Source of the DNA: Octopus sinensis
Taxonomy: Eukaryota
Assembly (NCBI RefSeq): GCF_006345805.1
Contig: NC_043004.1
Span: forward strand, 89,590,001 to 89,654,000
Reading direction: 5' to 3'
Length of the DNA stretch: 64,000 nucleotides
Both the position numbers and the translations under genes were made by a program. The notes beneath the pieces are model-generated. The model saw nothing but the letters and a program-made list of their open reading frames with translations, had not been told where the DNA came from and did not search any database. This document shows, in pieces, positions 27,908 through 58,425 of the stretch; within the stretch, counting starts at the first letter, position 1; each line of letters opens with the position of its first letter.

Positions 27908-28195
27908 CATCATCATCATCGTTTAACGTCTGCTTTCCATGCTAGCATGGGTTGGACGGTTCAACTGGGGTCTGGGAAGCCTGAAGGCTGCACCAGGCCA
28001 GTCAGATCTGGCAGTGTTTCTACAGCTGGATGCCCTTCCTAACGCCAACCACTCCGTGAGTGTAGTGGGTGCTTTTTATGTGTCACTGGCACGGAGGCTG
28101 GCAACGGCCACGATCGGATGGTGTTTGTTACGTGCCACCAGCACGGAGGCCAGTCGATGCGGTGCTGGCTACGGCCACGTTTGGATGGTTCTCTT
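27908..28195 (-). mobile_element. RTE-tailed short element (family B)
   Basis: Same motif set as 20946-21260. Confidence 0.9.
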
Positions 28196-28229
28196 ATGTG
28201 TGCAAATATATATTCATATATTCAGCTGT

Positions 28230-31690: not shown

Positions 31691-31710
31691 TGAGTGCTGT
31701 ACTGTAGTGG

Positions 31711-31745
<35 letters not shown>

Positions 31746-32299
31746 TATACATACCTATAATTTATGTATGCATATATACACACACATATGTATGTATACA
31801 CAGATGCATATACACATATACAAGTTTAGTTATTCATCTATCTATCTATTTTAAGGGACAATCCCTTAAAATAGCAAACATTCCTTAGCTACACACAAAA
31901 TAAAAAATGCTAGGAAGACAGGTTAGTTCCTCTCAAATTCTTTGTAAACTCTTAAATATATCTCTTTCTGTGTATATATACTATCAAACAAACGTGATTT
32001 TTATTGAACTCCTAATACTTTTTGTTGAATATTTTCTTAAATACTTTCTTGTAAACTGTTTTTAACATTTTCTTATTATTATCAAAGAATGTGTATATGT
32101 ATGTTAATACTTTTGTGATAATCAGTAATTAACACAACAAAGCTTTACATTTTACTTCTGACAATCTTTTTCTAAAAAAGTGAAACCAGTCAAGTGAATA
32201 AACATCTTTAAAATTGCATTTTCAAACTTTCTTTCATATATATTTCCACTTGTGCGATACCTTACAACTTCATTTTGTTATATATATATATATATTGCA

Positions 32300-35230: not shown

Positions 35231-35301
35231 ATGGCTAATGTCCTCGTTCAGCGGTTGCTTACTTCATTGAAAAGTAAAGAATTCAAAGAATACTTATGCA
35301 G
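35231..35301 (+). CDS. MPC1: Mitochondrial pyruvate carrier 1, coding exon 1 (71 nt)
   Basis: MANVLVQRLLTSLKSKEFKEYLC(S) aligns with human [24 protein letters not shown]. Ends AG|GTGAG (phase 2). Confidence 0.93.
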
Positions 35302-37689
35302 GTGAGAATATATATTACATAAAATATTATTGCAATGGATATATGTTGAAATAAGCTTTTGGGCCTTTGATAAGAAGCTACAAAATCTATAAAAGCTTGA
35401 TATTTGTAATTGAAAATACGGTTTTAATTTTGGTCTTAGAGCCTTTGTGCCTCTATAATTAATTTTTTGTTGTACCGAGTTGCCATCTCAAAGCAAACAT
35501 ACTGATATATTAGTGTACAATTAAGTTTTCTCTAGAGCTAGTGCGCGAATTTTCATATTTTATTCTGGTGGTATTTTTGATGTTGCATTACTAATTCGAC
35601 AATTTTCAGTGTAGTCAAAAATATCAATTTGATGTGCTCCTGAACGTTCATCCTCTCTTACTCTCTAAAAGTTTGAGAAACTTGTATATCCCCGATATAC
35701 ACTCACACACACACATTGTAAATTTTTCAGCCGCTTCTCTATGAAAGTGAACAATCCTTAGAAATCCAACCTTTTTTTTTACTCGTTAAAATCTCTTCCT
35801 GTCATGTATGTTTTTCCTGTTAATGTATTTTGAACAAATCTTACTACCATCAAAATCGTTGGTAATCACTCTTCAAAAAACTTCTCCCTGCATGTGACAT
35901 AGGTTTTTTGGCAAACCGGTTTTTTTTTTATTTTGATATTATCTTCATGATTGTGACCCAGTAAAGTGCACACCAGTGCTTCTTTGTATCTGTTCGACGG
36001 GAGATCAGTAAATCAAAAAGACACAAAAGCCGTGCCCTTCATTCGACTTTGATGTGTAGCATGCTACAATTGGGATATTACGAGTCCGTTTGCGTTTGCA
36101 TTCAGCGCTTGGACGCAAATAAAATAGAACGCAAGTTAATAAACTGGAACGTTCAGTCAAATTTAGACAGAAAGCTATATGCAGAAGTATGAGTGGAAAG
36201 TATACAGGTAGAACAAATAAGAATTAGTGGTGTAAAGCTTCTCCTGGACATTTCTTGTTCGTTTGGGGCAGCGAAACTAAAAGAGCGCTGATAGATCTTA
36301 CCTCATAGTAAAAAGAGTTTATTTACTTTTTTTTTTTGGCATTACTAAGTTAAATAAATAAAAGTGTAAAGAAGCATAAGCATCATAATAAAAGATACAG
36401 ACGCCTTAGTCCTGGAATTGGCTATTTTGGAGGCAGGTCGGACTGGAAAAGTTTTATAGCAATGTTTTTGGCTTATAGGTGCTGAAAGGGAAACTACTTG
36501 TCAGTGACCGTTGTTTGCGCGAATTGTGGCCTTGACATTGATTATGCGTGTGAAGGTAATAAGGTTAATCTGTAAGGTACCTGATTAATATGGATTTGTG
36601 AAGTCTGAATGATATTTTTCTTTTTGTAAAGGAAATCCGAAAGAAAATAGACATTGCTAGAGTTTCCGAGTTGGAAACTGCACTAGCAACTAAATTTCTC
36701 TGGATGTATGTTTTAAGCATTATCATGTACGATTCCATGCGAGTCTATGGAACCAGCTTTCTTGTTTTTTTAAATTTTATATTTTTCGTCGGAGTTTAAC
36801 TGACCTCCCAAGCATTTCTTAAGAACCTTATTTTTCTTGATAACAAACCAATATTTCGTGCTGTGGGGTCATTATCCCAATATAATTAACATACACACTG
36901 GTTCAATTTCACTCATTTATCAAATATCCGATTGTTTTGTTTTTGTCAAAGCTCTTTTGTTGCTTCTTGCTACCATTTTCAATGACAAAGATTGCAAGAG
37001 GTTATGTAAGAGCTTTGACAAACAAAAACAAAACAATCAGATATTTAATAAATGAGTAGAATTGAACCGGTATGTGTTTTAATTATATTGGCATAATGAA
37101 TCTCTTTAGACTCAACAAAATTTGTTTCAACACATGAATTCATATAAAGAATTTTGCAAACCAGATACCAAAACGAAGTAAAACAATACTTCTCTAGTGC
37201 ATTTTGTGTATCAAAAGTTCCATCCCTATTCATTTATTCATAGTAGTCATTAGTCATAATTTAAAACCGTGGGAAATTTTATTGCCTATATTATTATCAA
37301 ATTCCGTTAACATTTGATTGAATCAAAAGCTTCAAGAAGTTCTGAATTTGTTAACATATCACATAAGAAACATTTTGTTGGGTTGGTTATGGTACTTAGG
37401 TAGAAGAGACGGTAGAGGTAGGAAGCTGGGTACTAAAACATGAATGAATGACCCAACAATGTTTTGCATTTCCATATATTTATTGTTTCAATACATATGT
37501 ATTTATATATGTACAGTGAATTAATTGTAATAAGAAACATGTATTATGTGATATTTAAATATTTGCACTGCAAGACAGAAATGATTTTAATTAATACTAA
37601 ACAGAATGGTGGAATGAACTTTGCACTACTGGTCCTAAATATGGCCTATCCCGTTACTCTGAAAATTTTGTTAATTGTAAGAGATTGAT

Positions 37690-38030
37690 TTAAACCAAGG
37701 GCAAATGAAATCTTTGCTGGTACAGGAGTAAGAATTACAGGTACTGATGGAAAATCCCATACACAAAGTTACTGCCAGTGTGACTCTAAAACAACATTGA
37801 CCATGCCCTCTCATGCAGAAAGCGGGGTGGATTTTTGTCCATGAGACATAATTGTGTTTGGGTCTTTGAGGTATAATTGATGCGAAAGATGTGTAATGAT
37901 GTGAAGGTGAAAACCAAACTCCTCCCACTAGACACAAACGTGATGAGAAATTGCAATACTGCTGAAAAATCATGGTTAGTTGTTGTCTGGAATTGGAGTT
38001 TGGGGTCCCCTTGAAAAAAATCATTGTTGA
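37690..38030 (+). mobile_element. Possible CRE-like retrotransposon relic
   Basis: Translation ANEIFAGTGVRITGTDGK and a downstream GLGVP-like stretch resemble motifs in RLE/CRE-type RTs. Short and decayed. Confidence 0.35.
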
Positions 38031-38175
38031 ACATCAGTGTTATGTGCATCCAAATGCACCCACATATATAAACAAGACTTTGTCTTGGGTTTATGCAAGA
38101 CATGAATGGAAGAAGAAAATGACTTGGTGCTCCAAATAGAAAAGGGCTCTTCATTTTAAAAGAAAAATAGTTAGG

Positions 38176-38969
38176 AAAAATATAAGGATATTCTAAAAGA
38201 AAAATAGTTATAAAATACTTAAAAGAAGTTTAAATGTCAATATATTATTACAAACACTTTTTATATAGAAAGCATATGCTTGAAACTGTAATGTCATTAA
38301 TATTCTACTGATACATTCCTTACATCTTTGAAATTATGCTATAACACCTTAGATCCAACTTCTATGGATTTTTTCTTTTTAGTTGTAATGTTGATATGTA
38401 ACACCACCAAGAACTGCACTATGAAGACTAGGGAACTATATATAGAACATCCCAGAAGTCATGTCTACATCAGGAGAGATGGGAGAGGAAGCTAGTAAGC
38501 ATCACAAGGGGATTGCTCTCTTAATTGCTGAGAAACAAAAATGAAAGATACTCTGATGTTCTGAACTATATAAGAACAAGAATTAGATTTAGTCTACTGA
38601 AGAGCATCTTAATTGTACTTTAAGAGACAGAGAAATAAGCTTCACCTATTTCTATGCTGTCAGTCAGTCATATAGAATTCACTGAGGACTTCAGGGATGT
38701 TCTATATATAGTTCCCTAGTCTTCATAGTGCAGTTCTTGGTGGTGTTACATATCAACATTACAACTAAAAAAAAAATCCATAGAAGTTGGATCTAAGGTG
38801 TTATAGCATAATTTCAAAGATGTAAGGAATGTATCAGTAGAATATTAATGACATTACAGTTTCAAGCATATGCTTTCTATATAAAAAGTGTTTGTAATAA
38901 TATATTGACATTTAAACTTCTTTTAAGTATTTTATAACTATTTTTCTTTTAGAATATCCTTATATTTTT
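38176..38969. repeat. Long inverted repeat in MPC1 intron 1: ~285-bp arms, 226-nt spacer
   Basis: 38176-38460 is the reverse complement of 38687-38969 apart from one substitution and a poly-T difference. Confidence 0.96.
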
Positions 38970-39869
38970 GATAATAAACATTGATGAAAATACATATTAA
39001 TCAACAAAAAATCACTCGACTAACATTAAAAGAATTTGCAAATTTGAACAATGTTCATTGAAAGCTGTATGTTTTCATTTTATCAATATGAGTCTGATCA
39101 GTGGTAATCAATAAACTGATATAAACAGAACAAGGCAAATATTTATATGGAAAAATATTTGCATATATATATATATATATACTAGCTTACGGTGACCCGC
39201 TCTACGTGTGGGTGAGAGTGTGGTTGTTACTTTCTTTTGCTTCCTTTCTGTTGTTTATCACCACTGTCTCCCTCTTTGTATCTCTCTCACTTTCCCACTC
39301 TTACTCTTCCTTTCTCTCGGACTCTTACTCTCTATCTTTCTCTATGTATCTCTCTCCCATTTATAAACAACAAAAGATCTTGAGTAAGTTGAGAAAGAAA
39401 ATATTTTGAAAGATCAATCATAAATATCAGGCAGTGACAACGGAAAGGTCTGCTTTCTTCTAACTCATTTTGTGCTTTATAAAGTATTTATAAATCGTTT
39501 TTTGCTATTTTTGTTTAGAGATGGATAAGTCGGAAATTCGTATAGTTTTGAAATATAAGTTCCTGTAAAACAGGCCTTCCAAGGTTTTATTGATTCTAGA
39601 TTGCCAGGCTTTTACAGTTCCAGGCATGACAAGCTACCGCTGAAATGGCAAAAGTGTATTGACAATATGGGTGCATACTTTGATGAATAAAACTATTCCT
39701 TGTGTTTATAAAACATTAGCAAACTTCTTTTCTACAAATTTCATACTTGATGACCTAATACAAAGATAGCCCCCCCCCTGCCGCCAACCCCATCATTTCG
39801 AAGGTTGTAGCTTAAAAAGAAAAATGGGGAAAATCCCTGAAAAATTTTCTTCACAAATTTCTTTATAAT

Positions 39870-40068
39870 CGTAATCTATGCAAGGACAGACAAATGGATT
39901 AAGTCGATTATATTGACCCCAGTGCGTAACTGGTACTTATTTAATTGACCCTGAAAGGATGAAAGGCAAAGTTGACCTTGGCGGAATTTGAACTCAGAAC
40001 ATAGCGGCAGACGAAATACTGCTAAGCATTTCGCCCGGCGTGCTAACGTTTCTACCAGCTCGCCACCG
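39870..40068 (-). mobile_element. SINE family C
   Basis: Reverse complement of the CGGTGGCGAGCTGGTAGAAACGTTAGCACGCCGGGCGAAATGCTTAGC... element. Confidence 0.88.
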
Positions 40069-40101
40069 TGTATGTATATATACATATATATATATATATA
40101 A

Positions 40102-40143
<42 letters not shown>

Positions 40144-42623
40144 GGTGCCCCAGCATGGCCACAGCTCGTGAGCTGAAACTAGAATCAATCATATATATAT
40201 ATATATATATATATGTCTACATACACACACACACACATGAGGGGTGGTCATTAAAGATTTCCACTGACATGTCACATTCTAAATTGCAGCTTTCCACTAG
40301 TATTTGTTTGTCTTTCATGGATGCTGAAGTCGACTAAGGTGTTACAATTGCAGCAGTTGAATGCAGCTCAGTAATCAGGTTCTTATACTTGAAAAGTCAT
40401 ACACCAAAAGAAACCTAAAGGATTTGGTTTTATAAGCAATTTCAGATGCAAAACTAGCCATTTCTATGATCTGTTCAAACTATGCAATAACAAAGCTTGT
40501 AAACACTCTAAATTTGACTGTATCAGAATACCACCTCTAACATACTGTGGATGTTTACAAAATTACATCAGACTAACAAGATTATCGCTACATAGAAGAA
40601 TGAGCGTACATAATCAACAGATGATGGAAAAACAAGGAAAATTCCATTAAGTGGCCATATAGCAATATGTGCTTGAATGGAGTCACTGAACTTTATAATA
40701 TTTACATTTTACAAATGCATCGACTCTGCCACAGAACAAAAAATAAACAAAGTCAATTTATGCAATGAATAGCTGACAAATAATTTCTTCGAATTATGGG
40801 CATTTTAGATATGCAGGCATAGACATGCACATACATATTCACATACTGTTTTCTATATATGATAAAAAAATATTAACCTATGTGTGTGTGTGTGTGTGTA
40901 CACTAGTGAATGTGTATATATGTGTGTCTTTTATATTTTATAAAGGCTATTCAATTTTTCGCGGACAGTCTACATAAAAGGCCAGAGTTAGTACTTAAAT
41001 ATTTACCACCTGCTTGAAAACAAAGTTTATTTAACCATTTCTTATCTTTTATCCTGATTACCTCATTGTTATTCTACACACATTGTCATCTCTACCTATC
41101 TGCTTGCTAGTCTGTCTGTTTTTTGTTTGGCTTATCCTTTCATTTGTTGTCTTGTAACCTGATACTCTAGTTGTCTGACCAACTGCAACAATTTCAACCA
41201 TACAGCAACTGTTATAATTATTTTCTCTCTTTCAGACCAGTTATATGTTGGCTAAAAAAGATTCTTCTATCCCTCTGACCCCTACCCCTTTCCTTTCATT
41301 CCATGTGACCAGTGTTCCACACAGCCTGACCTTTCTTGGTTCAACTACCATCCATGTAGCATCTCATATTCCTTCCCATGACTTTCATATCTAATGTTCC
41401 TGCTGTAAGGCTTCACTTCTACACACACTGGCTTAATTTAATTCATCCTTACTCAAAAGACACCTGTTGTTAATGTCCTGCTGTTTGTATTTGTAATTGT
41501 GTACCATTTCTCCATTTTCTTCATTCTTGTTTTGGTATACATTTTGCTTGCTTTCTTTCAAAGAACCTAGTAACAAGTAATAACAAATAGAAGTAATAAC
41601 TTGTGATAAAATTTTTCAGTTTTAGTAAAAGCTAACATTTTCTAAATATAAATATTTTATTTGAAATTCTTATCCTTAGCTGCAATATTTTAAGTAAAAA
41701 TTTTCTTGTTTGTACTTTACCAGTTGTAAAAACTTGCCTGATCTTTTCCACATGTAATAACATGTCCTGTACTTTTCCAGATATATAGTCTTAAGAATAT
41801 AATTTCTCTTGCTCGCATTTTTCCATGTAATATACATATTATATGCATGTGTGGTGTGTGTGTATATATTATTATCATCATCATCATTGTTTAAGATCCA
41901 TCTACCATGCATGCATGGGTAGGACGTATCACAGGTAGAAAAACTACCCTGTTCTACTCTGTTTTGGCAGTGTATTTATGGTTGGATGCCCTTCCTAACA
42001 TCAACTACTACACAGAGTGGACTCAGTGCTTTTCACGTGGCACTAGCACAGGCAAGGTTAGTTTTGGCCTGATTTTTACAGCTGGATGTCCTTCCAAATG
42101 CCAACCACTTTACAGTAAAGACTGGATGCTTTTTACATAGCACCAGAACTGGCAGGGTCACTGAGTAACTCATAAGAAAAGGAATTATGAGAGGGGCAGG
42201 AGCATTTGAGGAGGGGAACTTGTGTCAGATGATGAAAGGTTAGAGGGAGGCAGAAATAGGTGTCTTGGTATAGAGGAGGTACATGGTTACCCAGCAAGAG
42301 AGAGAGAGAGAGAGAAAAAGAGAAAGCAACCAAGAATGAGGGCAGAAATAGGTATGCTGCTGTAGAGGAGATATTTGTGGCTACTCAGTCGCCAGAGGAA
42401 AGAGCAAGAGAAGAGTGAGAGAGAGAGAGTGGGAAAGAACAAGAGAAGAGTGAGAGAGAGAGTGGGAAACAACAAAAGTGTAAGAGAGAGCAGGTGAAAG
42501 ATGGTTATGTGCCAGGTATATTTACAAGTAACAAGGATCATAACATAGATGTAATAGTAGAGTAAAGAAAAGGGAGATATGAAGGTTGTAATATGTGTGC
42601 TCAGGTGTTGTCCAAAATATATG

Positions 42624-42992
42624 TAGGTTCAGGCATGGCTGTGTGGTAAGAAGCTAGCTTCCCTACTACATGGCTCTGGGTTCAGTACCACTGCATGGTA
42701 CCTTGGGCAAGTATCTTCTACTATAGCCTTGGGCTGATCAAAGCTTTATGTGTAGATTTGGTACATGGAAACTAAAAGATACTTGCCGTGTGTGTGTGTG
42801 TATATATATATATGTATGTCTATGTGTGTATATCTTTGTGTCCGTGTTTGTCCCCCACTTGACAACTGGTGTTGCTGTGTTTACATCCCTGTAACTTAAT
42901 GGCTCAGCAAAAGAGACCAGTAGAATAAGTATTAGGCTTAAGAAATAAGTCCTGGTGTTGATTTGTTTGACTAAAACCCTTCAAGGTGGTGC
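42624..42992 (+). mobile_element. SINE family A, diverged
   Basis: CATGGCTGTGTGGTAAG...GGCAAGTATCTTCTACTATAGCC...(TG/TA)n...AAAGAGACCAGTAGAATAAGT. Confidence 0.85.
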
Positions 42993-43609
42993 ACGTGCAT
43001 ACATACACACACACACAAGTTGATCTATGGACCAACAGTTACACATGTTAATTACTCAATATGAGTAATGTACTGAAAAACAATATTAAAGAAACAATTT
43101 TACTATAAATCATGTTATAATCTTCCACTACAAAAGTTATATATATTTATACATCTTAACCATCTTATATGGAAACGATTATTATATTCTAATATAGTAG
43201 AATAATTAATACTAGAATGTTACCCATCTTTGTAGCATATCTTTGAGCCTCCTCAGAAACATCAGACTCAAAAGTTTCTTTAGGAGCCAGTGATCCAGCA
43301 TGCAAACCACATGACCTGTCCTGTGCAGATGTGACTGCATCAAGATTGTGTGCGTGCTGGACAGTTCAGCATGAAAGAGTACTTCCGTGGTAAGAATTTT
43401 TTCTTACCACTTAATGCTTAGAATTTTTCTGAAGTGGGTAGTATGGGAGTGGTTCAGCTTCTTTGCATGCCACTGATAGAGAGTCCATTCTTTGTTAGAA
43501 ATTTTTCAACAATACTAAATTCTATCAATATTTGTTTGATAATTTCCTTTATTTTCTTTAACATAGTGTTTATTTTCTTTTTCATATGATGTTGTTAAAT
43601 GGTCAACAG

Positions 43610-43613
43610 TACT
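43610..43613 (+). CDS. MPC1: MPC1 exon 2, 4-nt microexon TACT
   Basis: CAACAG|TACT|GTGAGT supplies exactly the missing (AG)T ACT = Ser-Thr between exon 1 and the HFWGP exon. T-rich tract at 43571-43583. It is the only such AG-YACN-GTRAG site I noticed in 35302-49499. Confidence 0.83.
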
Positions 43614-45469
43614 GTGAGTATCTTCAATATTTTAATCAAATATTTCTTTTAATAACCTGATTTTAATACTTTTTAAACGGTAATCAAGCTACAAGTATCC
43701 ATTCTTTGTTGTAAGCATACTATCTGGAGATTTGACATCTCACTACCATTTTTGGATGTTTATGAGGTACTTTGTGAAGGAGATTAGTTGAGTTCATATG
43801 TTGTCATTTAAAACTCTTCAGTATTGTGTATATTTTCCATTGTTTTGATCAATTAACCTAATTCTTTGAACGTCTTATAGAATACTTATTACACAGTATT
43901 CTAGGGAATATCTTTATTGTTTTAACATTTATTGATATTACATTTCCACATTACTCTGTCATTTTATTTCTATGTAAAACACTATAAAAGAAATGTGTTG
44001 TACTAGAACATCATCCTCAATTATTCTGTTATTTAATTTTTCAGGATAAATGTTTTGGATATATCTGAAAACTTATGATATGCAGCTCTATTTTGAAAAT
44101 TATAAACATACTTTTTATTATTCATAAGTTATTAAGAAATTTTCTCTGAGCTTTTTCTTTATCAAAGAAGACTAAGACTATTGATAGTTATGTATAGTTT
44201 CAGAATGTTTTCACAAAGAATTTTTGAGTCAGTTTAACATTGCACCATTTATTGCTACTGAAGTTTGTATGCATCATAATATTTAGCAAGCAAGGAAACT
44301 TATTCATATTACAGATAAGAGACTTTGCTTGAAGAATTATTTCTAAACAAGGATATTATTATGGTTACTGGTGCTTCGGACAACTAATCAGATTTGTTAC
44401 TGGCTACTTTGAGAAAGACTTGGTCAGATATTGAAAAGTCAGAACTTAAAGTGAGATATGTGATTAAGGAAAGTTGGGTCACGCCCTTCCAATTGCTATA
44501 CATTCGTAATGCATCTTACGGCTGTGCCCATCACCTGGATGGTAAGGAATACTACATTGGGAGTGGTAACAACTAGGGTACTGTAGCTGACTGCTTATTG
44601 TGATCATTCGTCTTTTGGTTTTCTGTAGCTTTGCTCTCTTTTACAAACAAAGTGAACATATATTTCCTATTTCAAAGAAATTCAAACAATAGATATAGGA
44701 CTCAAGTTAAAAAGATTCTCAACAATTCAACTTCTCTGGTAGACATTAAGATGCCCACCCCCAATAGGGGCCTTAACTCTCATATTTTAGAGCTCCATGA
44801 CCTCCATTTTTCAGGAGCAAAATCCTTTTAACAGGTTCTATAAGACTGGAATTTTGGAATATGCGCATAAAAATCAGTAGTATGGGATACATGTGGCACG
44901 ATTACAATTTTTTTAGGGTGTGTAAAGAGGGAAATAACCCTCATCTGCAATTTTGATGAAATTCGAAACATACATATATCAGTTCATTACAGAAAATATA
45001 ACCGAAAAGTCTAATTCTTCAATTGCATGTAACACTGGCAACGTCGGGTAACTCTGCTGGTATATAAATAAAATAGAATTAATCAGATTGAATTGATTGA
45101 ATAAAACTGATAAAATTGATCATATGTTCATATTTAAGCGTAGTCAATATTTTTCAATGAATGTAGTCTCTTTATTTATCTGCTGTTGTTCAGAAGTTGT
45201 TCTACTACATTGATATAAAGGGAATATTTTAAAGTTAGGTTGAAAATTCCTAGCACATCTATATATGTGTTTGCTGAGCAGTATTTGTATCTTAAGAAGC
45301 AAAGTTATTCACTATACAGTGTTGTTTTTTGTCTTCATGTCATTCCTATTTGTCCTAAATAGTTCTGTTCACATCCCAAACAAGTTATAATGTAAATTAA
45401 GTTTTGTAGATGCACAGGTGAAGTCATTCTTTATTTTGAACTTGACTTTGTACTTGGTTTGAGAAGAAT

Positions 45470-45963
45470 TGTGAAGCCAAGTGAACTCATAGTCGTGGCT
45501 GATGCTGGTGTCACATAACTGGTACGTAAAAAGCACCTTTCGAACATTGGGCCTCACGGAGGCAATGATAAGTGACCAAGACCTTTGGTGATATGCCATG
45601 CTTGAGAAGACCTTTCCAGCCAAGTGAAATCGTGGTCATGGCTGATGCTGGTCTCATGTGACTGGCACGTAAAAAGCACCTTTCGAACATTGGGCCTCAT
45701 GAAGGCAATGATAAGTGACCAAGACCTTTGGTGATATTCCATGCTTGAGAAGACCTGTCCAGCCAAGTGAAATTATAGTCATGGCTGATGCTGGTCTCAT
45801 ATGACTGGCACGTAAAAAGCACACATTACACTTGTGGAGTGGTTGGTGTTGAAACCATACAAGATCAGATTTGAACCTGGTGTAGCCCTACAGCCTACCA
45901 GTGTCAGTTAAACCATCTAACCCACGCCAGCATGGAAAGCAGATGTTAAATGATGATGATGAT
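45470..45963 (+). mobile_element. RTE-tail element with 143-bp tandem units
   Basis: GCTGATGCTGG units at 45498, 45641 and 45784. Ends CCAGCATGGAAAGCAGATGTTAAATGATGATGATGAT. Confidence 0.85.
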
Positions 45964-46641
45964 AACTTTGTTGAAAAACGTAAACAAAATTTCTGTTTAC
46001 CTCTTTTTTCTTCCTCTCCTTTGTAAGTAAGGCATGCACTTTAATACATTAATGTTATCTTTGTCTTTTGTCCGGGGGGGGAGGGGTTCTGTATGTAGTG
46101 GGGGTTGACATTTGGCCTCTTTGTTGACATGTATTTAGGTGTCTGCCTCCCTCTCTCACACACACACCTATACCACGTTGTGATAATGGTACAGGACTAT
46201 GTCTACAGTTTCTTAATGGCTGATGAAATAGATTTGTTTTACTTCTCTTTTTTTCTTTAAAGAAAATGATTAAAGGAAACACTGAGTTTTAGCAAGCCAA
46301 ATGATTTATATATCTTCTGGTGACAAAACATTTCTATTGAGTTGTTCTTTTTTACCTCTCTTCTGCATCCCGTTTGAATTGTGACATAAACTGATGGATT
46401 TTATACATAATATAAGAGTCAATGATCGATTGTATCAGTATATTGATATCTCAAGAATCTATAGTTGCAACAATTATATAATAATATTGCAATACTATTG
46501 AGATCAAATGTCAAAGAAACAATTGTAAATTTATGTAATAAAACAACTTGCTCACTCCAATCTCCTTGTGAATAATTATATATGTATATTATATAGTGAA
46601 AATTAAGGTAAGCACCAGCATAAATATTTAGTTCCTACATA

Positions 46642-47030
46642 TAGGCGCAGGAGTGGCTGTGTGGTAAGTAGCTTGATAACCAACCACATGGTTCTGGGTT
46701 CAGTCCCACTGCATGGCATCTTGGGCAAGTGTCTTCTGCTATAGCCCTGGGCCGACCAATGCCTTGTGAGTGGATTTGGTAGACGGAAACTGAAGACTGT
46801 CGTATATATGTATATATAAATATGTGTTTGTGTGTCTGTGTTTGTCCCCCCAACATGGCTTGACAACCGATGCTGGTGTGTTTACGTCCCCGTCACTTAG
46901 CGGTTCGGCAAAAGAGACTGATAGAATAAGTACTGGGCTTACAAAGAATAAGTCCCGGGGTTGATTTGCTCGATTAAAGGCGGTGCTCCAGCATGGCCAC
47001 AGTCAAATGACTGAAACAAGTAAAAGAGTA
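46642..47030 (+). mobile_element. SINE family A, full length
   Basis: TAGGCGCAGGAGTGGCTGTGTGG...CAAATGACTGAAACAAGTAAAAGAGTA. Confidence 0.92.
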
Positions 47031-47399
47031 ATATATATCACGATTGCAGTTTATTAGAACTTGGCATTGGATGTTCCAGGTGCATTTGGATGCCTATCTG
47101 CAGTTAGACATCCAAATGTTATGTGCATTTATATTAACATTGCTTTGTTCTACTGCCAGTATATGGCATCCACAACCAATGGCAGTGATAATAATTAATC
47201 AGTTAACCAATATATGTATTTACTGGTATCTGTACTAACACTGCTGTAAGTAGTGCTGATATAGCACCCACATCCAATGGAGGTAGCAAGTGTAACATAA
47301 ATGATGGTGGATTAAATGCGAGGACAACTGCTATGACATGTCTGTTGGCAAATGCTCATTACAATCTTCTTTTTGGATGCTGATAGCCACAGTTCCTCC

Positions 47400-47800
47400 T
47401 CCTCATGTTATCTCCTGCCTCCCCATACATTCCCTCAGAGTTGGTACTGTCAATGTAGGCACATTGAAAGGTAGGTCTAGTGAGATTGTTGATATGCTTG
47501 AAAGGAGATGTGTTGATGCGTGCTGCATCCAAGAAGTTCAGTGGAAGGGGAGCTTCAGCCAGGTTCCTCATTGGTAAAAGGCATAAGTATAAACTCTTCT
47601 GGGAGGGCAACAGTGATGGGCTAGGAGGTGTTGACATACTTCTAGCAGAGAAATGGGTAAATAAAGTGATTGAAGTAGTCAGAGTATGCGATAGGGTACT
47701 TAAGCTTAGACTAGTTTTGCAGAATAGCACAGCAACAATCATCTCTGCTTGTGCTCTCACTCCCACCAGGTCTGCCAAATGAACAAAAGGACCGCTGAAA
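47400..47800 (+). mobile_element. RTE endonuclease (APE) fragment
   Basis: LRVGTVNVGTLKGRSSEIVDMLERRCVDACCIQEVQWKG / YKLFWEGNSDGLGGVDILL...EVVRVCDRVLKLRL. Confidence 0.85.
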
Positions 47801-48037
47801 AGGACAGTTACTATATATATATATATATACATGCAATTATTTGGTAAATGGTGCTGAATTTTACACTTATGTAAATAATAGTAACTAGCTGACCCCATGA
47901 AAACTTCATGGAAAACACAAAAGATGTAAGTATCTGTAAATTGTGTACTGGTGCCATGAGAAATGTTTCTATATTGCGACAGGAAACCATTCATCTATCC
48001 CTAGTTTCCTCATTGACCATCAGATAAGGGATTGGGG

Positions 48038-48077
<40 letters not shown>

Positions 48078-48978
48078 GGGTGCAATGAGTAAATTATTTG
48101 CCATTTTATCTTTTTAATTTTGTGCCTGCACAAAATATGTTTTTGATTTTGTCAACTACACAGCATAGTAGGGTCAGTTGGGCAATGTTTGTCAGGAAAA
48201 CAGCACTGTGATGCAATTCACTATGACAGAAATTTGGAAATGACATGCTGTATTGCTGGAAGCTCCAATATGAACATTTCAGAGTGTTTTGGTGTCAATC
48301 TGATGACAGTGCAATCTGAAAGTGATAAAAATCAAGCATCCAGTCAAATAAAGTTCATTGCATATACGTAATTGAGAGACAACTGTCCTGACAGTGTTCT
48401 GTGTTGGCAAAAAGTTAACACAAATAATTCAAGCAGTTGGATATATTTCATGATGTGAAGTCTAATGTTTCAGATGCCTCTTTGGAGAGAGACAAGATAT
48501 AAATATCTCAAGTTGCAAAATTACAAATTATAAAAAAATGTGGGATGATATTGAGGGGTAGATGCAGGGAGATAAAGGGAGCGAAAACAACTAGAGTGTA
48601 ATGGTATGAGCAGTATAGGAGATATATGATGTGAGAGGAATTAAAATGTAGAAGAGAAGTTGTCAAAAAAATAGCATGATAGAAGTCAGGTGAAAAAGTG
48701 AGTGCCAGGGAGGCGGCTGAATAAGGAGTTGTGTTTTATCATTTTCTCAACTTTCTTTTGTTTTCTGGGGGGGATATAATAATCATCTTTTTGAATAGTT
48801 TGTTCAATGGCAGCATGTAGCTTCATAATTTGTGTCTACTAAACTGATGATATTCATTGTTATTTATAAGTTTAGTGAATGCTCAATTCCTTGCCATCTT
48901 ATAGATATTGCTTTTTCTTTTCTTCAGTATCCTTAAAAATTTTTTAGAATGTTTTCAGAGACTGTTTTGATATAACAT

Positions 48979-49316
48979 TATCATCATCATCATCATCGTT
49001 TAACGTCCGCTTTCCATGCTAGCATGGGTTGGACGGTTCAACTGGGGTCTGGCAAGCCCGAAGGCTGCACCAGGCCAGTCAGATCTGGCAGTGTTTCTAC
49101 AGCTGGATGCCCTTCCTAACGCCAACCACTCCGAGAGTGTAGTGGGTGATTTTATGTGCCACCGACACAGGTGCCAGACGAGGCTGGCAGACGGCCACGC
49201 TCGGATGGTGTTTTTTATGTGCCACCGACACAGGTGCCAGACGAGGCTGGCTGACGGCCACGCTCGGATGGTGTTTTCTTATGTGTCACCGACACAGGTT
49301 CCAGACGAGGCTGGCG
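48979..49316 (-). mobile_element. RTE-tailed family B element with ~63-bp tandem units
   Basis: Same motif set as 20946. Units at 49154, 49217 and 49281. Lies ~185 nt upstream of MPC1 exon 3. Confidence 0.9.
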
Positions 49317-49499
49317 ATTTTTTAGTTTATAAATATGATTATACATGTATAAAATGCTTTTATTAGACTCCTATTAATTATTTCATATTCAAGTAGTTGT
49401 CATTTTTGACTATCAGTTTCTCAAAAAGTTCTGAATTGTTTCTACCACTTAAAATCATTTTAATATCTATTCAGGAATTTTTTTTTTTTTCTTTTGTAG

Positions 49500-49515
49500 C
49501 ACTTTTGGGGACCAG
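49500..49515 (+). CDS. MPC1: MPC1 exon 3, 16-nt microexon
   Basis: Poly-T TTTTGTAG|CAC TTT TGG GGA CCA G|GTAAGT encodes the invariant MPC1 motif HFWGP plus the first base of Val. Confidence 0.92.
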
Positions 49516-49834
49516 GTAAGTTTATTATATTAATATTTAATATAGAAATGAATAACTCATGCAAGAAGGAATGACATTAAATAATAATTTTTTTACTCTA
49601 TGCATAAAGCCTGAAATTTTGTATTGAGGGCCCTAGTCAATTATATCAAGTTCAGTGAATGACTGGTACTTATTTTATCGCTCCCAAAAAGATGAAAAGC
49701 AAAAGTTGACCATAACAGAATTTGAACCCAGAATGCAAAGACGGACGAATTGCTGCTAAGCATTTTGTCCAATATGTTAATGATTCTGCCAGCTCACCAC
49801 CTTATGGCATTAAATGATAATAGTCCCACTCAAA

Positions 49835-50159
49835 AAGGTCCCAAAATAAGGGTTGTTTAAGGATGATGAATGAAACACCCTTGTTTCCAAGGTGAATCAT
49901 GCAAATGCCAAACGATTCCTCTCAATACCTAGCTGTGATGCTCTTCTCACTACTCCTGCTCATGATCAAACATGCATATATTGTCAGCCACTAAAGGACA
50001 TGCTGGTTAAGGTGAAGCAACTGACAAGCAAATCTGTGATATTGAACAAAATACATGCTTTAGTCCATCTTACACCAAGACAAAACATGTGCATGTTAGC
50101 ACTTCCAATCAGTTAAGACCTTGAGCCATGGGAGCCAATGCCTGATATTTCTTCAGAGC

Positions 50160-50208
<49 letters not shown>

Positions 50209-50210
50209 TT
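49835..50210 (+). mobile_element. Family E repeat, 3' part with (TTA)n tail
   Basis: Homologous to 52130-52500 (AAGGATG.TGAAT.AAACACCC.TGTTTCCA...ACACTTCCAATCAGTTAAG) and ends in a long (TTA)n run. Confidence 0.8.
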
Positions 50211-50329
50211 ATTCTCAGAGCACTCAGTCTTGTTTGCTCAGGTTGATTCTGTGAAAGCGGACAGCTGCCTGTTGTCAGAGGTCTCACAGGGTCTCTTTCC
50301 ACACAGCTATGATTAATTGGTTGTTCACT

Positions 50330-50686
50330 ATGTTGGGCCCCATGGAGGCAGTGTGGCTGACTTCCTTTTGAGTGTTAGGCCTCAAAGAGGCAATGAACAA
50401 AACCTTTGGCATTATGTCATGCTTGAAAAGGAGGCCTATAAAGCTGAGCAAAATCACTGTTGTGGCAGATACCAGTGTCATGCAAATGGCACCCATGCTG
50501 GTGGCATGTAAAAGTACCCATTATACTCTTGGAGTGGTTGGCATTAAGAAGGGCATCCAGCCATAGAGAATCATGCCAAATCAGACTGGAGTAAGATGCA
50601 GCCTTCCATGTCACCAGCCCTGGTCAAACCGTCGAACCCATGCCAGCATGGACAACAGATGTTAAATGATAATGATGATGATGATC
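50330..50686 (+). mobile_element. RTE-tailed family B element, diverged; a further partial copy at 51685-51843
   Basis: GGAGTGGTTGGCATTAAGAAGGGCATCCAGC...CCATGCCAGCATGGAC...GATGATGAT. Confidence 0.8.
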
Positions 50687-51104
50687 CCATGCCTTCCTGA
50701 GTCTACTTCTTCCACAATTAGAGATCGGCACTTCTTTATGCAGCTGTCTTCATCCATACTCAATCACATGACCATACCAACTTAGCTTTCTCTCTTGCAC
50801 ATTACATCTGATACCTCTTATACTTAAGAAACAACATTGAAAAAATAGTCGACAGCAGTATATCTCCATAAAGGAATTTCACCAAAGAAAGAAAAGAAAA
50901 TTTAGAAGTAAAATCAAATCAAAATTCAACACTCTAATACATCACATGTAAACTAAATTATGAAACCCATTGGACTTAATCACTGCATGATTTTTAAACC
51001 TGGCATTAACTATTATAGCTATGACAATGATTATTCTCTGATCCTCTTGCTAAGTAGATAAGATTAAATATACTCGTATCTTGATGGTAATATGTTTGAG
51101 TTAA

Positions 51105-51470
51105 GTTAATTTTTTGGCTCAAAAAGCAAAAAGCAAGGCCATGTAGGGGGACATGGAGTTATGTACAGGGAGGGTGTTCATGCAAAGAGTTCAGGCCATT
51201 TCTGGTCAAAAGAGACTTTGAACCGAGCGGTCATCGGCATCTTCACTATCTTGTCTGGCAGCTTATTCCACAGATCCGCAACCCGGACGGAGAAAGCCCC
51301 TCTCTTTCGATTGAGATGAAATCGTCGCAGATAGAGCTTTTCGGAGTGACCCCGCAGCCGACGCTCTGGAGCAGGAGTGAAGAACAGCTCTTTCGAGAGG
51401 TTACACTTTCCGCTTATGATGTTGTGAGCAAGAATGAGATCACCACGGTGTCGTCATTTTTCTAGAGAAT
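51105..51470 (-). mobile_element. CR1/L2 LINE 3' fragment
   Basis: Minus strand reads RHRGDLILAHNIISG...RRLRGHSEKLYLRRFHLNRKRGAFSVRVADLWNKLP. Confidence 0.85.
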
Positions 51471-51917
51471 AAGGAAAAGATGTTCCCTATTTACACACAT
51501 ACGTATTCTTATATATGCATACATATATGTGTGTGTATACACACATTTCAGATAAAGCAAGGTTGATTTACTAGCTGAAAGAGTGGAAACGTGAAACAGT
51601 TCTGGCAATTACGAGTCCTTTAATTATAATGTATTAAAGAATACTTAACATTTACATATTGAATTTCATAATTCATTGCAACCACTCTTGGAGTGGTTGG
51701 CATTAGGAAGTGCATCCAGCCATAGAAAACCATGCCAAATCAGACTGGAGCATGGCACAGCCTTCTAGTGTGCCAGCCCAGTCAAACTGTCCAATCCATG
51801 CCAGCATGGACAATGGATGTTAAATGAAGATGATGATGATGACATTCATCACCCAAGTACCAATGTCATAATCCTATCCTCCTCCTCCCATCCTCACCCC
51901 CTCCTCCTTAATTTTGA

Positions 51918-52453
51918 GTGAGAGAGCAGTGTATGCCATCAAAGTAACACTGGGGTAAATATACGAAACCCAGCAAACCCATCATGACTATCTGTCTGAT
52001 AAGGGTACACCAGGCTCATGCATTGCAATCATATATACACGACATGGTGATCTCATATCAAGATTAACAGTGCATGACTTTGCAGATAGGGCTCAGTTAA
52101 AATTTTCTACAGGTCGAGTAGTCCATCTCACTCATAAGGGTTGGTTAAGGATGTTGAATAAAACACCCATGTTTCCAAAGATGAGTTATCCAGACCCCAA
52201 AGAATTCCTTTCAACACATGGTTATGATGTTCCCCCCACTACTTCTGCTTGTGATCAGAGATGCACATATCGTCAGCCACTAAGGGACATGCTCAACTGG
52301 TTATGGTCAAACAACTGACAAGCAAATCTGTGGTATTGAGAAGATTTACTGTAGCCCATCTTTTATACCAAGACAACACAATGTACATGATAACACTTCC
52401 AATCAGTTAAGATGAGAAGCCATGAAAGCCACTGCCTGGTACTGCATCAGGGC

Positions 52454-52501
<48 letters not shown>

Positions 52502-53035
52502 GAGAGAGAGTGGTGCATGACATCAAAGCAACATGGGTACAAACATTTGGAGCCCAATATACCCATCATGGCCACCTATCTGATAAAGGTACACCAGGCA
52601 TATGCATCACGACCATATGTACACAAGATGGTGACCTCATATCAAGATGAACAGTACATGATCTTACAGATGGAACCAGTTAGAATTTTCTTAGGTCAAG
52701 TAGCCCATCCCACTCAAAAAGTCCATGAGGAAGGGTTGTTTAAGGATGATGAATGAAACACTCATGTTTCCAGAGGGGAATTATTCAAGTCCCAAAGAAT
52801 TCCTCCTAACATGTGGCTATGATGCTTCCCCACTACTCCTGCACATGATCAGAGACATGGTCAACTGGTTAAGGTTAAACAACTGACAAGCAAATCTGTA
52901 GTATTGAATAGAATATTTGCTGTAGCCCATCTTTTACACCAAGACAAAGCATGTACATGTTAACACTTCCTATCAATTAAGATCAGATGCCACGGGAGCC
53001 ACTGCCTGGTACTGCATCAGGGCATTATTATTATC
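51918..53035 (+). mobile_element. Head-to-tail dimer of a ~550-bp family E repeat, joined at a (TTA)n tail
   Basis: Copy 1 51918-52500 and copy 2 52501-53035. Both start GAGAGAG..GTG...CATCAAAG.AAC and end GGTACTGCATCAGGGCATT(TTA)n. Confidence 0.85.
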
Positions 53036-53589
53036 ATCATCATCATTGTTTGGTTGTGAACTGTCAAAACCATTAGCATGTCAGGCAAAATGCTTAGTGG
53101 CATTTCATCTGTCTTTGCGATCTGAGTTCAAATTCCACTTAGGTCTACTTTGCCTTTCATTCTTTTGGGGTCAATAAAATGATGTAATCAACTTATCCCT
53201 TCCTTCGAAATTGCTGGCCTTGTGCCAAAATTTGAAATCGTTGTTGTTAGAGGAGGAGGAAAGGAATGACACCTGTCCAAAATTTATGAGTTTTGTTTAA
53301 TTTTGTTGTTTCAAAGATTGTTATTTGTATTCTTGTACTATCAAATTTAATAAACCGACTTGCTTTCTCTACAGTGAGCTGGCTCTGTGAAATATTCATG
53401 AATTTAGGAACTTAAATTGGCAAAATTCAATATTTTAAAACAAAAAACACGGTTTCTCAAATCAAAGGAGATGATGGCTCTTGGAACAAAAGAACTGATT
53501 TTGGAAAATACTCTGCTATATGAGGAATTAAACATCTGTTCCTCCACAAATTCTTTTCACCCTCCTCCTCTGTTGCCATGCATAAAACC

Positions 53590-55100
53590 CTATTTAGAAT
53601 AAGCAATGGGAATACTGGGTTGTCTTGGAAACAGGACCACCTGTTCAGTGACCTCAGATGTGGTGGCCAAAGTGAAATACTCATTTTCAGTGAGTACAAG
53701 ATTGTTTATTTTCATGTCAATTAGGAATAGGGGTGGGGTGGAGAAACTGCAGTATTATTTCAGAAAGGTAGGTATCTCATGGTACAGAGCATTTTCGTGG
53801 ACCCAGAGGGTAAGTTGATGGTCCTGAATGGGAACAGTAGCGAAGGGGGTCACTTCCAACTAGTAGCTGTTTATGCTCTGACAGGGGCAAGATAGCTGGA
53901 TTTCTTTAGACATCTGGTTTTTTTCGGTGTGTCCCAATATTTAGTGCTAGTGGGCAACTGGAATGCCATCATCGATGTGCATTTGGATTGTACAGGGCTA
54001 GCTAATAGAAGAAGAGTGTAAGAGCCTTTTTCAGCCTCCTCTGACATTTCTGATTGTTTGACGGTACTGACTGAATTTCCCAAATCTACCTATGTGGACG
54101 TGGAAAAACCACATCGGGTCATCAAGGTCATATCTAGATGGAGTATTTTATACATTTGTAGTTAAAGATGGCATGGGTTGTTCACTATTTAAAATTTCCT
54201 ACCACACAGACCACAAATTTGTGATTTGTACAGTCAACCTAGATAGGCTCCTGAAGGCAGGGACCCAGTTACATGAAGTGGAATGTATAACTCCTGGTGC
54301 ACTAATCTTACAGAGACTGAATTAACGAATTAGTTAAGTGGGCATTGATGGGGGTCAATTGTCAACAACAAATGGTAGTTTGTACCAGAAAAGGTGATTA
54401 GAATAGAATCAACTGGGTTTAGTAAGGCAGTAATGAAAGAAGAAAACAGTAGAAAATAGAAACTTTGAAGAGGCACTTGGGACAGGCATAGCATCTAATG
54501 TACCTGCAGAAAGATTGGCCCTTAACCAATTGTTCATTGCTAAGCATAAAAAGTCTGTGTTGTTTTTCTCTAGGACTCAAGAGAATGAAAGCCACTCAGT
54601 GTGTCCAAGTGGTAGGAGCACAACATGACAACAAAGCCTTGATTTGGTCTTTGGTGACCAAAATAGATGCATGTTACTTGAGCTTGAGCAGATGCATGAG
54701 GTATATCAGCAGCTCCTCATACAACTGTTTGGGGCAATTGGGGAACTGGAACACTGGATGGACTTCAGTAACTACTTTGATGGTCTATTGCAACTCTTGG
54801 CAAGTGAAACAGTGTTGTGCAAAATTGAAAACGACCATGAAAATACAGGATTGGCTGCAGGGGGTGGGAGTGAGGAAAATTTCCTGGTTTGGATGGTCTA
54901 CCCTACATCATATAAATTTTTATTTATATGTCACATGCTTGGAGGTCTCTTGGCATATATTTACCACAAGTTGTAGAATGGAAGAATTCCTAGTTCTGTG
55001 AACCAAAAGCCATGGCACTACTAGGGATCAAATTGATAGTTTTAGGCTTATAATTTTGCTAAATGCAGATTTCAAAATTCTGACATAAGTGTTGAGGGAC
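53590..55100 (+). mobile_element. Decayed Tx1/L1-like LINE (endonuclease and part of the body)
   Basis: Fragments GKLMVL..., FQLVAVYA, GNWNAII and TWK...RSYLD resemble Tx1-type APE motifs. Many disruptions. Confidence 0.6.
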
Positions 55101-56631
55101 TGATTGGCAACACCAGGTACATGGACCTGATCAGCACTGCTCTAAGGGAGTATGAGGCAGTGACAAGAGCAAAAATCAACAAAAGAAAGTTAGGCCTGCA
55201 ACTCAGCGCCTTTAGAGATAGGTCCAGTCGGGTTTGGTCCAGATCTCCAAGTCTCCAGGTGAAGAACTAGAATTAGGTGAGATGTCAACCCACCCATTTC
55301 AGTGAAACTGAGATTCTGGAAGCACAATGTGTGTGTGTGTGTGTGCGCGCGTGCACGTATACACACACACACACATTTCCTCTAACCCTATTTCCTCCTC
55401 ATGTCACTCCCACTAACCATCATCTCTTAACCTTCAGTATTGTGTTGCTGTTATTAAATGTGAGCAGAACTGCATACTTAATCAGGTCACTACCAGAACA
55501 ATTTCACTTGATATCCAGCCTTTATTCTTATTACTCTCTTTCTATCCACATTTTACACTGATCATACTCCCGGGTCATGAAATAGTCTTTCCTTCTTCAC
55601 TACTATACATTTTTCACTCTGCTCATGTAATATGCCTGCTTCTCTACCCACTCACTTTGCAGCCTACTGAATATGTCATCTCTTTCTTTCACTCTTTCTC
55701 TCATCCTCTCCCTGACTTTAATAGTTATTATTATTCTCCTTTATGCATTATAAGTCATTTCTTACTCTCCCTTATCTCCCCCAAACTCATGTATCATAGG
55801 TCACTCCTCACTCCTTATCCACCAGTCTCTATGTCTACCCCTCAAGCCTACCTACTTTTTCTTATCATCTCTACTTATCATCCCTCAACACTGTTCTTCA
55901 TTCATTATATTCACCTCACACCCATTTCCCATCTCCAGTCATATCTCACTCTTGTTATATCTCACCTGAATTTCTTATGCACCTGTATTTCCTATCTCCC
56001 TCCCTACTGTAGCCCCATTTAGTCAAAGAGAATTTTAGTGTTGCAAACTTCATGGTGACATCATTATTACTAGTTCCACAAAAGCAGCACAATGAAAGAA
56101 ACCCGTGAAGTGGTTGGCATTGGGAAGAACATTCAACTGTAGAAACCATGTTAAGCAAACTTTGGGGCATGAATCACCCATAAAATGAAGTACATGAACT
56201 GCTTAGAAAGCTCACTAAATGTATTAAGATTGTTTCTGTTATTTAGATATTTTCTTAGATCATTTAAATAACAGAAACTATCTGCTAAGTGTGTTGAGGC
56301 ATTCAAAGATCTATTACTTTTTTTAAAAACAAAAAGAAACTTCTCTCACCATGTGAAAAGACAAACTGCATGAAGTATGCATAAAGATGGTGACATTGTA
56401 TAGATATTCACTACAAAAAAATTTTGAAGGCTGGAGTTGATTTAGTATTAGATATAAGTTTAATGTTCTTGAACATTTTCATTAGCTTCCAAAAAAAAAA
56501 CCTTTAACGTTGATGAAAGGAGTGTCCAAATGAAGAAAAACATATTTCTGTCATTGATGAATGACTGAGTGATGTAAAGTGTAGATCAGATGTTATAGTA
56601 CTGCAAGAATTGAATGGGAAAGATTAACTAA

Positions 56632-56820
56632 CTCTCTTTTACTTGTTTCAGTCATTTGACTGTGGCCATGCTGGAGCACCGCCTTTAATCGAGCAAATCG
56701 ACCCCGGGACTTATTCTTTGTAAGCCCAGTACTTATTCTATTGGTCTCTTTTGCCGAACCGCTAAGTGACGGGGATGTAAACACACCAGCATCGGTTGTC
56801 AAGCAATGCTAGGGGGACAA

Positions 56821-56851
<31 letters not shown>

Positions 56852-57017
56852 CATATATACGACAGGCTTCTTTCAGTTTCTGTCTACCAAATCCACTCAC
56901 AAGGCTTTGGTCGGCCAGGGGCTATAGCAGAAGACACTTGCCCAAGGTGCCACGCAGTGGGACTGAACCCGGAACCATGTGGTTGGTAAACAAGCTACTT
57001 ACCACACAGCCACTCCT
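56632..57017 (-). mobile_element. SINE family A, full length, inverted relative to 46642 and 62284
   Basis: Reverse complement of the family A sequence. Confidence 0.92.
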
Positions 57018-58344
57018 AAGTGAACAATGTTTATATTTGTTTTTATTTAGAACAGAAAAATTCTAGATTACTGTCTGCAGAATTAATATTAATCAAGTTT
57101 GTTCATGAAATATTCTTGAACAATTTTGCTAGAATCTGATAAGACTTTATCTCTTAAAACAAATGTCCAAATGAAAAAAAGACATTCTCTCACTTACATT
57201 GAAGACAGCCTCAATTCTCAGCTAACTGGGAATTGAGACTGTTATTTTCTGACTACCATTACAAGTCCCTCCTCTCTCATAATGGAAACAGTTTTATGCT
57301 CATTTCCCTTACATCCTCTTAGTAACTAAGAACTCTCTAAATCTACTCTCTCCATCATGGAGTGATGTAACTACCAAGCTGTATTCAAGGCAATCCATCT
57401 AGGAAGTTGAGTACTCTGAACAGAGGAGACAAGTAGTAGTGAAGGTCATCCATCTAGGACAGCAGTAACTCTGAATAAAAACTAATACTGTGAAGAAGGT
57501 TTGTGTAACAAGCATTCAAAAATAGTTAGTAGCAAGAGCACTCATTAACTGAATTTTTTAAACTGTCCAGAAAGATCACTGAATACTATCGAGAGCTTCT
57601 AATACCTAGGTGACCTTATTAGGCTGCAATGGGAGTTGTAGGGTTGAAAATTTCAGGTGACTATTCTGAAGGAAATAAAGGGTTTCTTTCTCTAAGTGCA
57701 GGGCAGATTGTATGATGCCTACGTGTAGAAACATAGGCACTCAATGAGAAAAATGTGTGCTTGCTGGAAAAGAAAAATGAAGCAAGTATGCTCTGGTGGA
57801 TGTATAACATTTACATGCAAGAATGATGGTTCACAGATGAGCTACAATAAAAAAAAAAATTGGTTGTAGATGAAACGACATACTAGTTCGATGACTGTGC
57901 TATACAGATATATAGTATGTCTGAAGTTGAGTAAAGATGTGCTAAACAATCCAAGTGAAGGTAACCTCCAGGCTACTCTTGATCAATGATGAAAGGGTTT
58001 CCAGATACGATCATCCCATCTCTTTTGTAAGTTCAGGATTCTGTTATCCACTGTGTCCCGTTTTTTAAGACAGGAGGGTGTAATTTGGGGAATATTTGGA
58101 AGCTAATTTTAGCAGGTCAAACAACCACATAGAAACTTCTTTATTGGCACTATGATGTTGGATAATTGGATTCTACGAATAGATGATGACAAATGACTAT
58201 ATAACAAATAGCAAGATACTGTACTGGGGAAGCTTGTTCATCCCATGCCAACATGGAAAAACTAACACAAAATGATTATGATGTTCATTGCTAATTTTAT
58301 GCTATATCATAACATTGTTATTATATCTTACTTTATTGTTCCAG

Positions 58345-58425
58345 TTGCCAACTGGGGCCTTCCACTGGCTGCTATAGCAGACGTTAAAAAAGATCCAGGT
58401 TTCATCAGTGGGAAGATGACAACTG
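58345..58425 (+). CDS. MPC1: MPC1 exon 4 (81 nt); the remaining exons lie beyond the window
   Basis: TTCCAG|TT GCC AAC TGG GGC...ATG ACA ACT G|GTAAG = (V)[26 protein letters not shown] vs human [27 protein letters not shown]. I found no LC.YS..FMRFA exon in 58426-64000. Confidence 0.95.

Follow-up and report, generated by a model that had tools for sequence, protein, structure and literature searches.

Can a coding exon of four nucleotides, followed several kilobases downstream by another of sixteen, be recognized in genomic DNA, and how old is such an arrangement? The question is raised by a 64,000-nt stretch of the Octopus sinensis genome (RefSeq assembly GCF_006345805.1, contig NC_043004.1, positions 89,590,001 to 89,654,000, forward strand), here called the window, whose own numbering is used for its features throughout. 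Within it, a first-pass annotation had proposed a gene for mitochondrial pyruvate carrier subunit 1 (MPC1) with two microexons in a row. Here, we report that positions 35231-58425 (+) very probably carry the 5' half of an MPC1 orthologue, microexons included, laid out on an old exon plan. The window retains that plan and is unusual only in its three introns of 6-9 kb.

Exons and reading frame of the window's MPC1 gene

The first coding exon (E1; 35231-35301, +), located by tblastn with human MPC1 residues 1-22, contributes 71 nt from ATG to TGCAG, is followed by the donor gtgaga, and ends after base 2 of the Ser24 codon (phase 2). Intron 1 (35302-43609, +; 8308 nt, phase 2) leads to E2 (43610-43613, +), a 4-nt microexon (caacag/TACT/gtgagt) that supplies base 3 of the Ser codon and an entire Thr codon. 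Intron 2 (43614-49499, +; 5886 nt, phase 0; acceptor T12-CTTTTGTAG) precedes E3 (49500-49515, +), a 16-nt microexon set as T12-cttttgtag/CACTTTTGGGGACCAG/gtaagt and encoding HFWGP plus base 1 of a Val codon. Intron 3 (49516-58344, +; 8829 nt, phase 1), which is missing in vertebrates, Tribolium, a sponge and two fungi, is followed by E4 (58345-58425, +; 81 nt; ttccag/TTGCC...ACTG/gtaagg; tblastn E = 3e-11), which encodes V and 26 further residues up to a phase 1 donor. All microexons and exon junctions of E1-E4 have AG/GT borders, and the joined translation is a 57-letter peptide, with a predicted mRNA junction of ...TTATGCAG-TACT-CACTTTTGGGGACCAG-TTGCCAAC... The exon lengths (71, 4, 16 and 81 nt), their positions and splice sites, and the intron lengths all agree with those given in the first-pass annotation.

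Its further claim that skipping either or both microexons disrupts the frame also held, since omission of E2, of E3, or of the two together leads each time to a stop codon inside E4. Extending E1 past its donor meets TGA and extending E3 5' of its acceptor meets TAG (both read directly), so that a separate 4-nt piece is required.

Assignment to MPC1 was borne out by profile and alignment. The joined peptide matched the Pfam family MPC (PF03650) with 47.8 bits (cutoff, 27; E = 1.8e-12), residues 14-56 lying on profile positions 6-46 of 110, and aligned gaplessly with human MPC1 residues 1-56 (PDB 9mnw_A; E = 3e-20). Top PDB matches were MPC1 chains (9mnw_A and 8yw6_A), with MPC1-like scoring lower and MPC2 unlisted; named protein matches in the databases were MPC1, generic MPC or nameless, none of them labelled MPC2. 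The residues S-T-H-F-W-G-P, encoded by both microexons, are nearly invariant among the MPC1 sequences collected.

The 16-nt exon is beyond chance. Searching both strands of the window for its pattern AGCAYTTYTGGGGNCCNGGT (AG-CAYTTYTGGGGNCCNG-GT) gave a single match, where 0.01 would be expected even with 2 mismatches allowed; the match is E3. The donor CAG/gtaagt agrees with the consensus at 9 out of 9 positions, and a T12 polypyrimidine tract lies by the acceptor.

Searching the window with human MPC1 by tblastn matched only E1 and E4 and gave nothing for the C-terminal half (about 52 codons); with that half unmatched, MPC1 should continue beyond the window end. Missing 3' exons and repeat-filled introns are what would be seen if the locus were a decaying or nonfunctional copy whose exons are mere relics, but we consider this very improbable. 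All four exons are open, the peptide is 100% conserved over a 14-residue stretch, and both microexons carry near-ideal splice signals; exons as small as 4 nt and 16 nt, each with consensus splice sites, would not survive over 23 kb in a copy that was processed or dead, and the only retrocopy encountered (in Lemmus) is intronless.

Protein database searches with the MPC1 peptide returned no match above ~75% identity, and a metagenome scan with the E2 flank returned none. As a control, the 736-aa zinc-finger open reading frame (ORF) of the window gave nothing above 57% identity in a protein search and no record in an exact-sequence look-up. Because the control also lacks a close match, the protein database lacks this lineage, and the missing MPC1 protein is uninformative about the annotation of this genome.

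Tandem repeats occur within intron 2 at 45459-45822 (143 bp × 2.5) and 49150-49315 (63 bp × 2.6), the latter ending just 185 nt 5' of the 16-nt exon. ORFs at 47359-47994 and 54498-55001, both intronic, had no Pfam match.

Identity of the 4-nt exon

Four bases are too few to prove the identity of E2. Between E1 and E3 there are 61 AG-N4-GT sites, two of which code for S-T: TACT at 43610 and CACT at 48204. The site at 43610 ranks first out of the 61 on donor score (gtgagtat, 4.7 bits, against 3.2 for the runner-up), its donor agreeing with the consensus GTRAGTAT at 8 out of 8 intron positions. Upstream of it lies a 41-nt AG-free zone, and the best 15-nt stretch holds 14 pyrimidines. The pattern AGYACNGTRAGT has a single match in the window (at 43608) in 128 kb of strand searched, where 0.13 would be expected; scaled to the 14.2-kb one-strand interval that holds E2, and into which the match falls, the expectation is ~0.014. 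The flanks of E2 and of E3 are each single-copy within the window.

The other S-T-coding site could itself be the true 4-nt exon of an otherwise identical MPC1 gene, as CACT at 48204-48207, 1.3 kb 5' of the 16-nt exon. It, too, has the form AG/CACT/GT, its first base gives the CACN found in 7 out of 8 nonvertebrate orthologues, and its distance to E3 is akin to that in Lottia (1250 nt) and Haliotis (779 nt). We nevertheless judge it unlikely, given a donor (gtgatg) that scores -0.5 bits against 4.7 at 43610, an AG-free zone of just 6 nt with several AGs close 5', and no pyrimidine tract; all six animal orthologues have a GTAAGT donor at this exon, unlike gtgatg. A TA microsatellite-like repeat also lies ~135-165 nt 5' of 48204.

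With as many as 61 AG-N4-GT sites in the interval and a 4-mer that sequence cannot prove, TACT could also be coincidental and the 4 nt be drawn from another source, such as a different first exon or a microexon with noncanonical GC-AG or AT-AC borders. This we regard as the most improbable of the readings weighed. Extension of E1 or E3 runs into the stop codons given above, the interval holds one full-pattern site where ~0.014 are expected, and the sole GC-donor candidate coding for S-T is poor. That candidate (47728, gcaaca), the single site offering a GC-donor alternative, was rejected.

Several points weigh against the MPC1 gene with TACT as its second exon. The 3' half of the gene lies beyond the window, and an open frame was seen for E1-E4 only; the splicing of these exons is predicted from sequence. 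The donor score uses approximate textbook frequencies in place of a trained model, and the rival S-T-coding site at 48204 has the first base of most nonvertebrate orthologues. The sequence itself, the frame, the homology, the orthologous exon borders and the quality of the splice signals were all read directly, and from them we infer actual splicing of the gene, a branchpoint position, and constitutive inclusion of the microexons, the last being expected because every skipped form bears an early stop codon.

MPC1 exon plans in other genomes

MPC1 loci were fetched via database proteins, and their exons were mapped by hand (coding exons and introns, lengths in nt). This comparison, of the kind that the first-pass annotation had proposed but reaching beyond molluscs, other protostomes and vertebrates, showed that the 4-nt exon recurs: as AG/YACN/GT, it occupies the codon position of the window's E2 in eight other species, which range from fungi to gastropods and a tick.

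Among the gastropods, Lottia gigantea has E1 of 71, intron 1 of 6663, E2 of 4 (CACA), intron 2 of 1250, E3 of 16, intron 3 of 365 and E4 of 81; in Haliotis rubra the same exons (71, 4 [CACA], 16 and 81) are parted by introns of 8703, 779 and 4399. The coral Orbicella faveolata (71, 4 [CACG], 16 and 81; introns of 87, 128 and 1929) and the tick Ixodes scapularis (68, 4 [CACG], 16 and 81; introns of 128, 208 and 74) have the same four-exon order. In the annelid Capitella teleta, E1 was not found within 10 kb upstream, and E2 of 4 (CACC), intron 2 of 63, E3 of 16, intron 3 of 127 and E4 of 81 follow the same order. A separate 16-nt exon with identical borders, then an 81-nt exon, is thus present in all five, and the window conforms to this 4+16+81 plan with AG/CAYTTYTGGGGNCCNG/GT followed by an 81-nt exon that starts from base 2 of the Val codon (window introns of 8308, 5886 and 8829, with TACT as the 4-mer). 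These five species share with the window the plan 68-71/4/16/81, the borders and the intron phases (2, 0, 1 and 1). Their 4-mer begins with C (CACN), whereas that of the window begins with T.

In four further loci, E3 and E4 are fused. The sponge Halichondria panicea has E1 of 65, intron 1 of 131, E2 of 4 (CACA), intron 2 of 71 and a fused exon of 97; the fungus Basidiobolus ranarum has E1 of 68, intron 1 of 62, E2 of 4 (TACC), intron 2 of 63 and a fused exon of 97; and the chytrid Geranomyces michiganensis has E1 of 80, intron 1 of 118, E2 of 4 (CACG), intron 2 of 329 and again a fused exon of 97. In the beetle Tribolium castaneum, E1 of 68 and intron 1 of 45 are followed by E2, E3 and E4 fused into 101.

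In Orbicella (219-nt gap) and Ixodes (337-nt gap), the 4-nt exon is the sole AG-N4-GT site between E1 and E3, and the public protein models of both read CSTHFWGPVANWG. Donors of the 4-nt exons are GTAAGT in six animals and weaker in the two fungi (gtatgt and gtaagc); AG-free zones, measured in five orthologues, span 30-89 nt.

By these exon borders, the 4-nt exon predates the animal-fungus split, and the 16-nt exon predates the cnidarian-bilaterian split, vertebrates and the beetle having lost intron 3 later. Being common to coral, annelid, gastropods and tick, the 16-nt exon is ancestral and the vertebrate 97-nt exon the fused state. The earlier description of a 97-nt exon split here into 16+81 therefore has to be turned around, with five other species carrying the 16-nt exon with identical borders and the fusion being derived; the novelty that it implied for the layout likewise falls away, the plan being ancient and common to coral, annelid, gastropods and tick. 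Since sponge and fungi carry the 97-nt form, two histories fit: a gain of intron 3 along the cnidarian-bilaterian stem, where it may have originated, or its loss in the sponge and fungal lineages. The comparison thereby dates both microexons, and it is the vertebrates that simplified the plan.

Taken further, we think it somewhat probable that an obligatory 4-nt exon has held one codon position for >1 billion years, from chytrid and zoopagomycete fungi, by way of sponges, corals, annelids, molluscs and ticks, to humans, joined by a 16-nt obligatory partner since the cnidarian-bilaterian ancestor. A literature search for deep conservation or for cephalopod microexons surfaced only the human/mammal MPC1 paper discussed below; in the literature searched, conservation is described among mammals only, and neither the great age of the 4-nt exon nor that of the 4+16 pair appears to have been reported.

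The Lemmus lemmus locus was rejected as a gene-structure reference, since it is intronless and offers no exon plan to read. What is annotated there as MPC1 is a 75-codon copy (L006, 2001-2228) that translates straight from DNA, presumably a processed retrocopy. Directly 5' of MPC1, a CSTF2-like gene (RRM_1, CSTF2_hinge and CSTF_C) stands head-to-head with it in Haliotis (L002, 1-9615) and Ixodes (L005, 1-1535), which suggests that the CSTF2-MPC1 pairing is an old microsynteny; tblastx found no CSTF2 trace in the window.

Proposed splicing and annotation of the microexons, and the rest of the window

The closest studied counterpart of E2 is human MPC1 exon 2, a 4-bp exon (TACG) lying between long introns (Koh, Shin & Kim 2023, PMC9929638). 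It is constitutive, being present in all detectable mRNA even with nonsense-mediated decay blocked, and 67 nt of upstream intron plus a 6-nt donor suffice for its inclusion (PMC9929638). Human intron 1 has a pyrimidine-rich region at -67 to -43 and main branchpoints, unusually distal, at -68 and at -63 or -64; the cross-species figure of that study is limited to mammals (PMC9929638). The first-pass annotation had given a 4-nt second exon in human MPC1, which this study bears out, and coding lengths of 71+4+97, which fit both the gapless alignment and the methods coordinates in the paper, given a reading of a garbled "49 bp" (PMC9929638).

Human exon 2 and the window's E2 share the gene, the length, the YACN form and a frameshift on skipping. 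Both stand after base 2 of the Ser24 codon and before His26, in the codon context AG of Ser / CAY of His, so that the positional identity claimed earlier between window and vertebrate stands. Both also have long flanking introns and a consensus intron-side donor. Their letters differ (TACT in the window, TACG in human), as does the next exon, which in human is 97 nt and in the window is 16 nt, an 8.8-kb intron and then 81 nt, giving two microexons in succession. Experiments in human cells addressed splicing, branchpoints and whether the island suffices; for the window, these features are predicted from DNA. The last 67 nt of its intron 1 have pyrimidine-rich stretches (about -67 to -51 and -43 to -27) well 5' of the acceptor, with the proximal 25 nt mixed, a layout resembling the displaced tract and branchpoints of human intron 1; the candidate branch sites read from the window's intron, TTAAC (A near -49) and TTCAT (A near -26), are guesses.

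On the model of human MPC1, recognition of each microexon would depend on its flanking intron and not on its own bases; introns of such length would require the sequences beside the microexons to define them. All three introns being 6-9 kb, each microexon is isolated, and among the compared loci only the window has both microexons >5 kb from their neighbours on each side. The 4-nt exon would act as an "exon island" in which a distal pyrimidine tract and a probable distal branchpoint are combined with an extended stretch free of AG and a donor that matches U1 fully on the intron side. Its 8/8 intron-side donor match may compensate for the absent exon-side U1 pairing, and a distal branchpoint would prevent the complexes at the 3' and 5' splice sites from colliding across 4 nt. 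For the 16-nt exon, the T12 tract beside the acceptor and the perfect CAG/GTAAGT donor would serve, and both microexons would be needed in every productive mRNA.

A 4-nt exon followed by a 16-nt exon, both of a length not divisible by 3 and both with an intron of >5 kb on either side, make a demanding splicing substrate, and the window's MPC1 could probe how general the human "exon island" rule is. If the 4-nt exon and its 16-nt partner are as ancient as proposed, the window would be an extreme natural test, and a portable, self-sufficient intronic island code across very distant spliceosomes would be implied. MPC1 function is unaffected by these findings.

Annotation was expected to miss such exons, and in part it does. 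Out of 240 MPC1 database models inspected, 34 begin at HFWGP or slightly ahead of it, or carry wrong residues for S-T, in a sample biased to short models. The Lottia model (L001, 10001-18491) has CRY in place of CST and breaks the gene into two parts, and a corrected splice restores CSTHFWGP; in the Geranomyces model (L010, 1501-2136), a 40-nt exon replaces the 4-nt exon, and the gene is also split. The Halichondria model (L008, 6001-6493) begins inside intron 1, that of Capitella (L004, 10001-10417) begins at HFWGP, and the Clonorchis, Chytridium and Mortierella models have wrong residues. The expectation fails for Haliotis, Orbicella and Ixodes, however, whose public models contain both microexons. 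In plants, ultra-short microexons (≤15 nt, coding and constitutive, with lengths frequently not divisible by 3) are deeply conserved, depend on strong signals in the introns beside them, and are frequently overlooked or garbled when genomes are annotated (Yu et al. 2022, PMC8831610). Those belong to another kingdom and to other genes, MPC1 being unmentioned there (PMC8831610). A core metabolic gene can be lost or garbled by annotation at its microexons, and the pattern AG/YACN/GTRAGT ... AG/CAYTTYTGGGGNCCNG/GT would rescue faulty MPC1 models.

Elsewhere in the window, a block at ~26000-34000, just 5' of E1, has a GC content of ~45% against 33-37% around it; a 159-bp tandem repeat lies within the block at 26173-26566, and ORFs of the block had no Pfam match. 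Further upstream, C2H2 zinc-finger arrays form long single ORFs (+) at 1461-3839 (792 aa), 11340-13550 (736 aa) and 24324-25346 (340 aa), the first two each with an internally duplicated finger block; the best database relatives are just 57% identical. Large tandem C2H2 zinc-finger genes, low GC content and very long introns would suit an octopus-like genome. Retroelement remnants of the RVT_1 type (+) are clear at 16653-17531 (82 bits) and weak at 5775-6203 (20 bits, below the cutoff).

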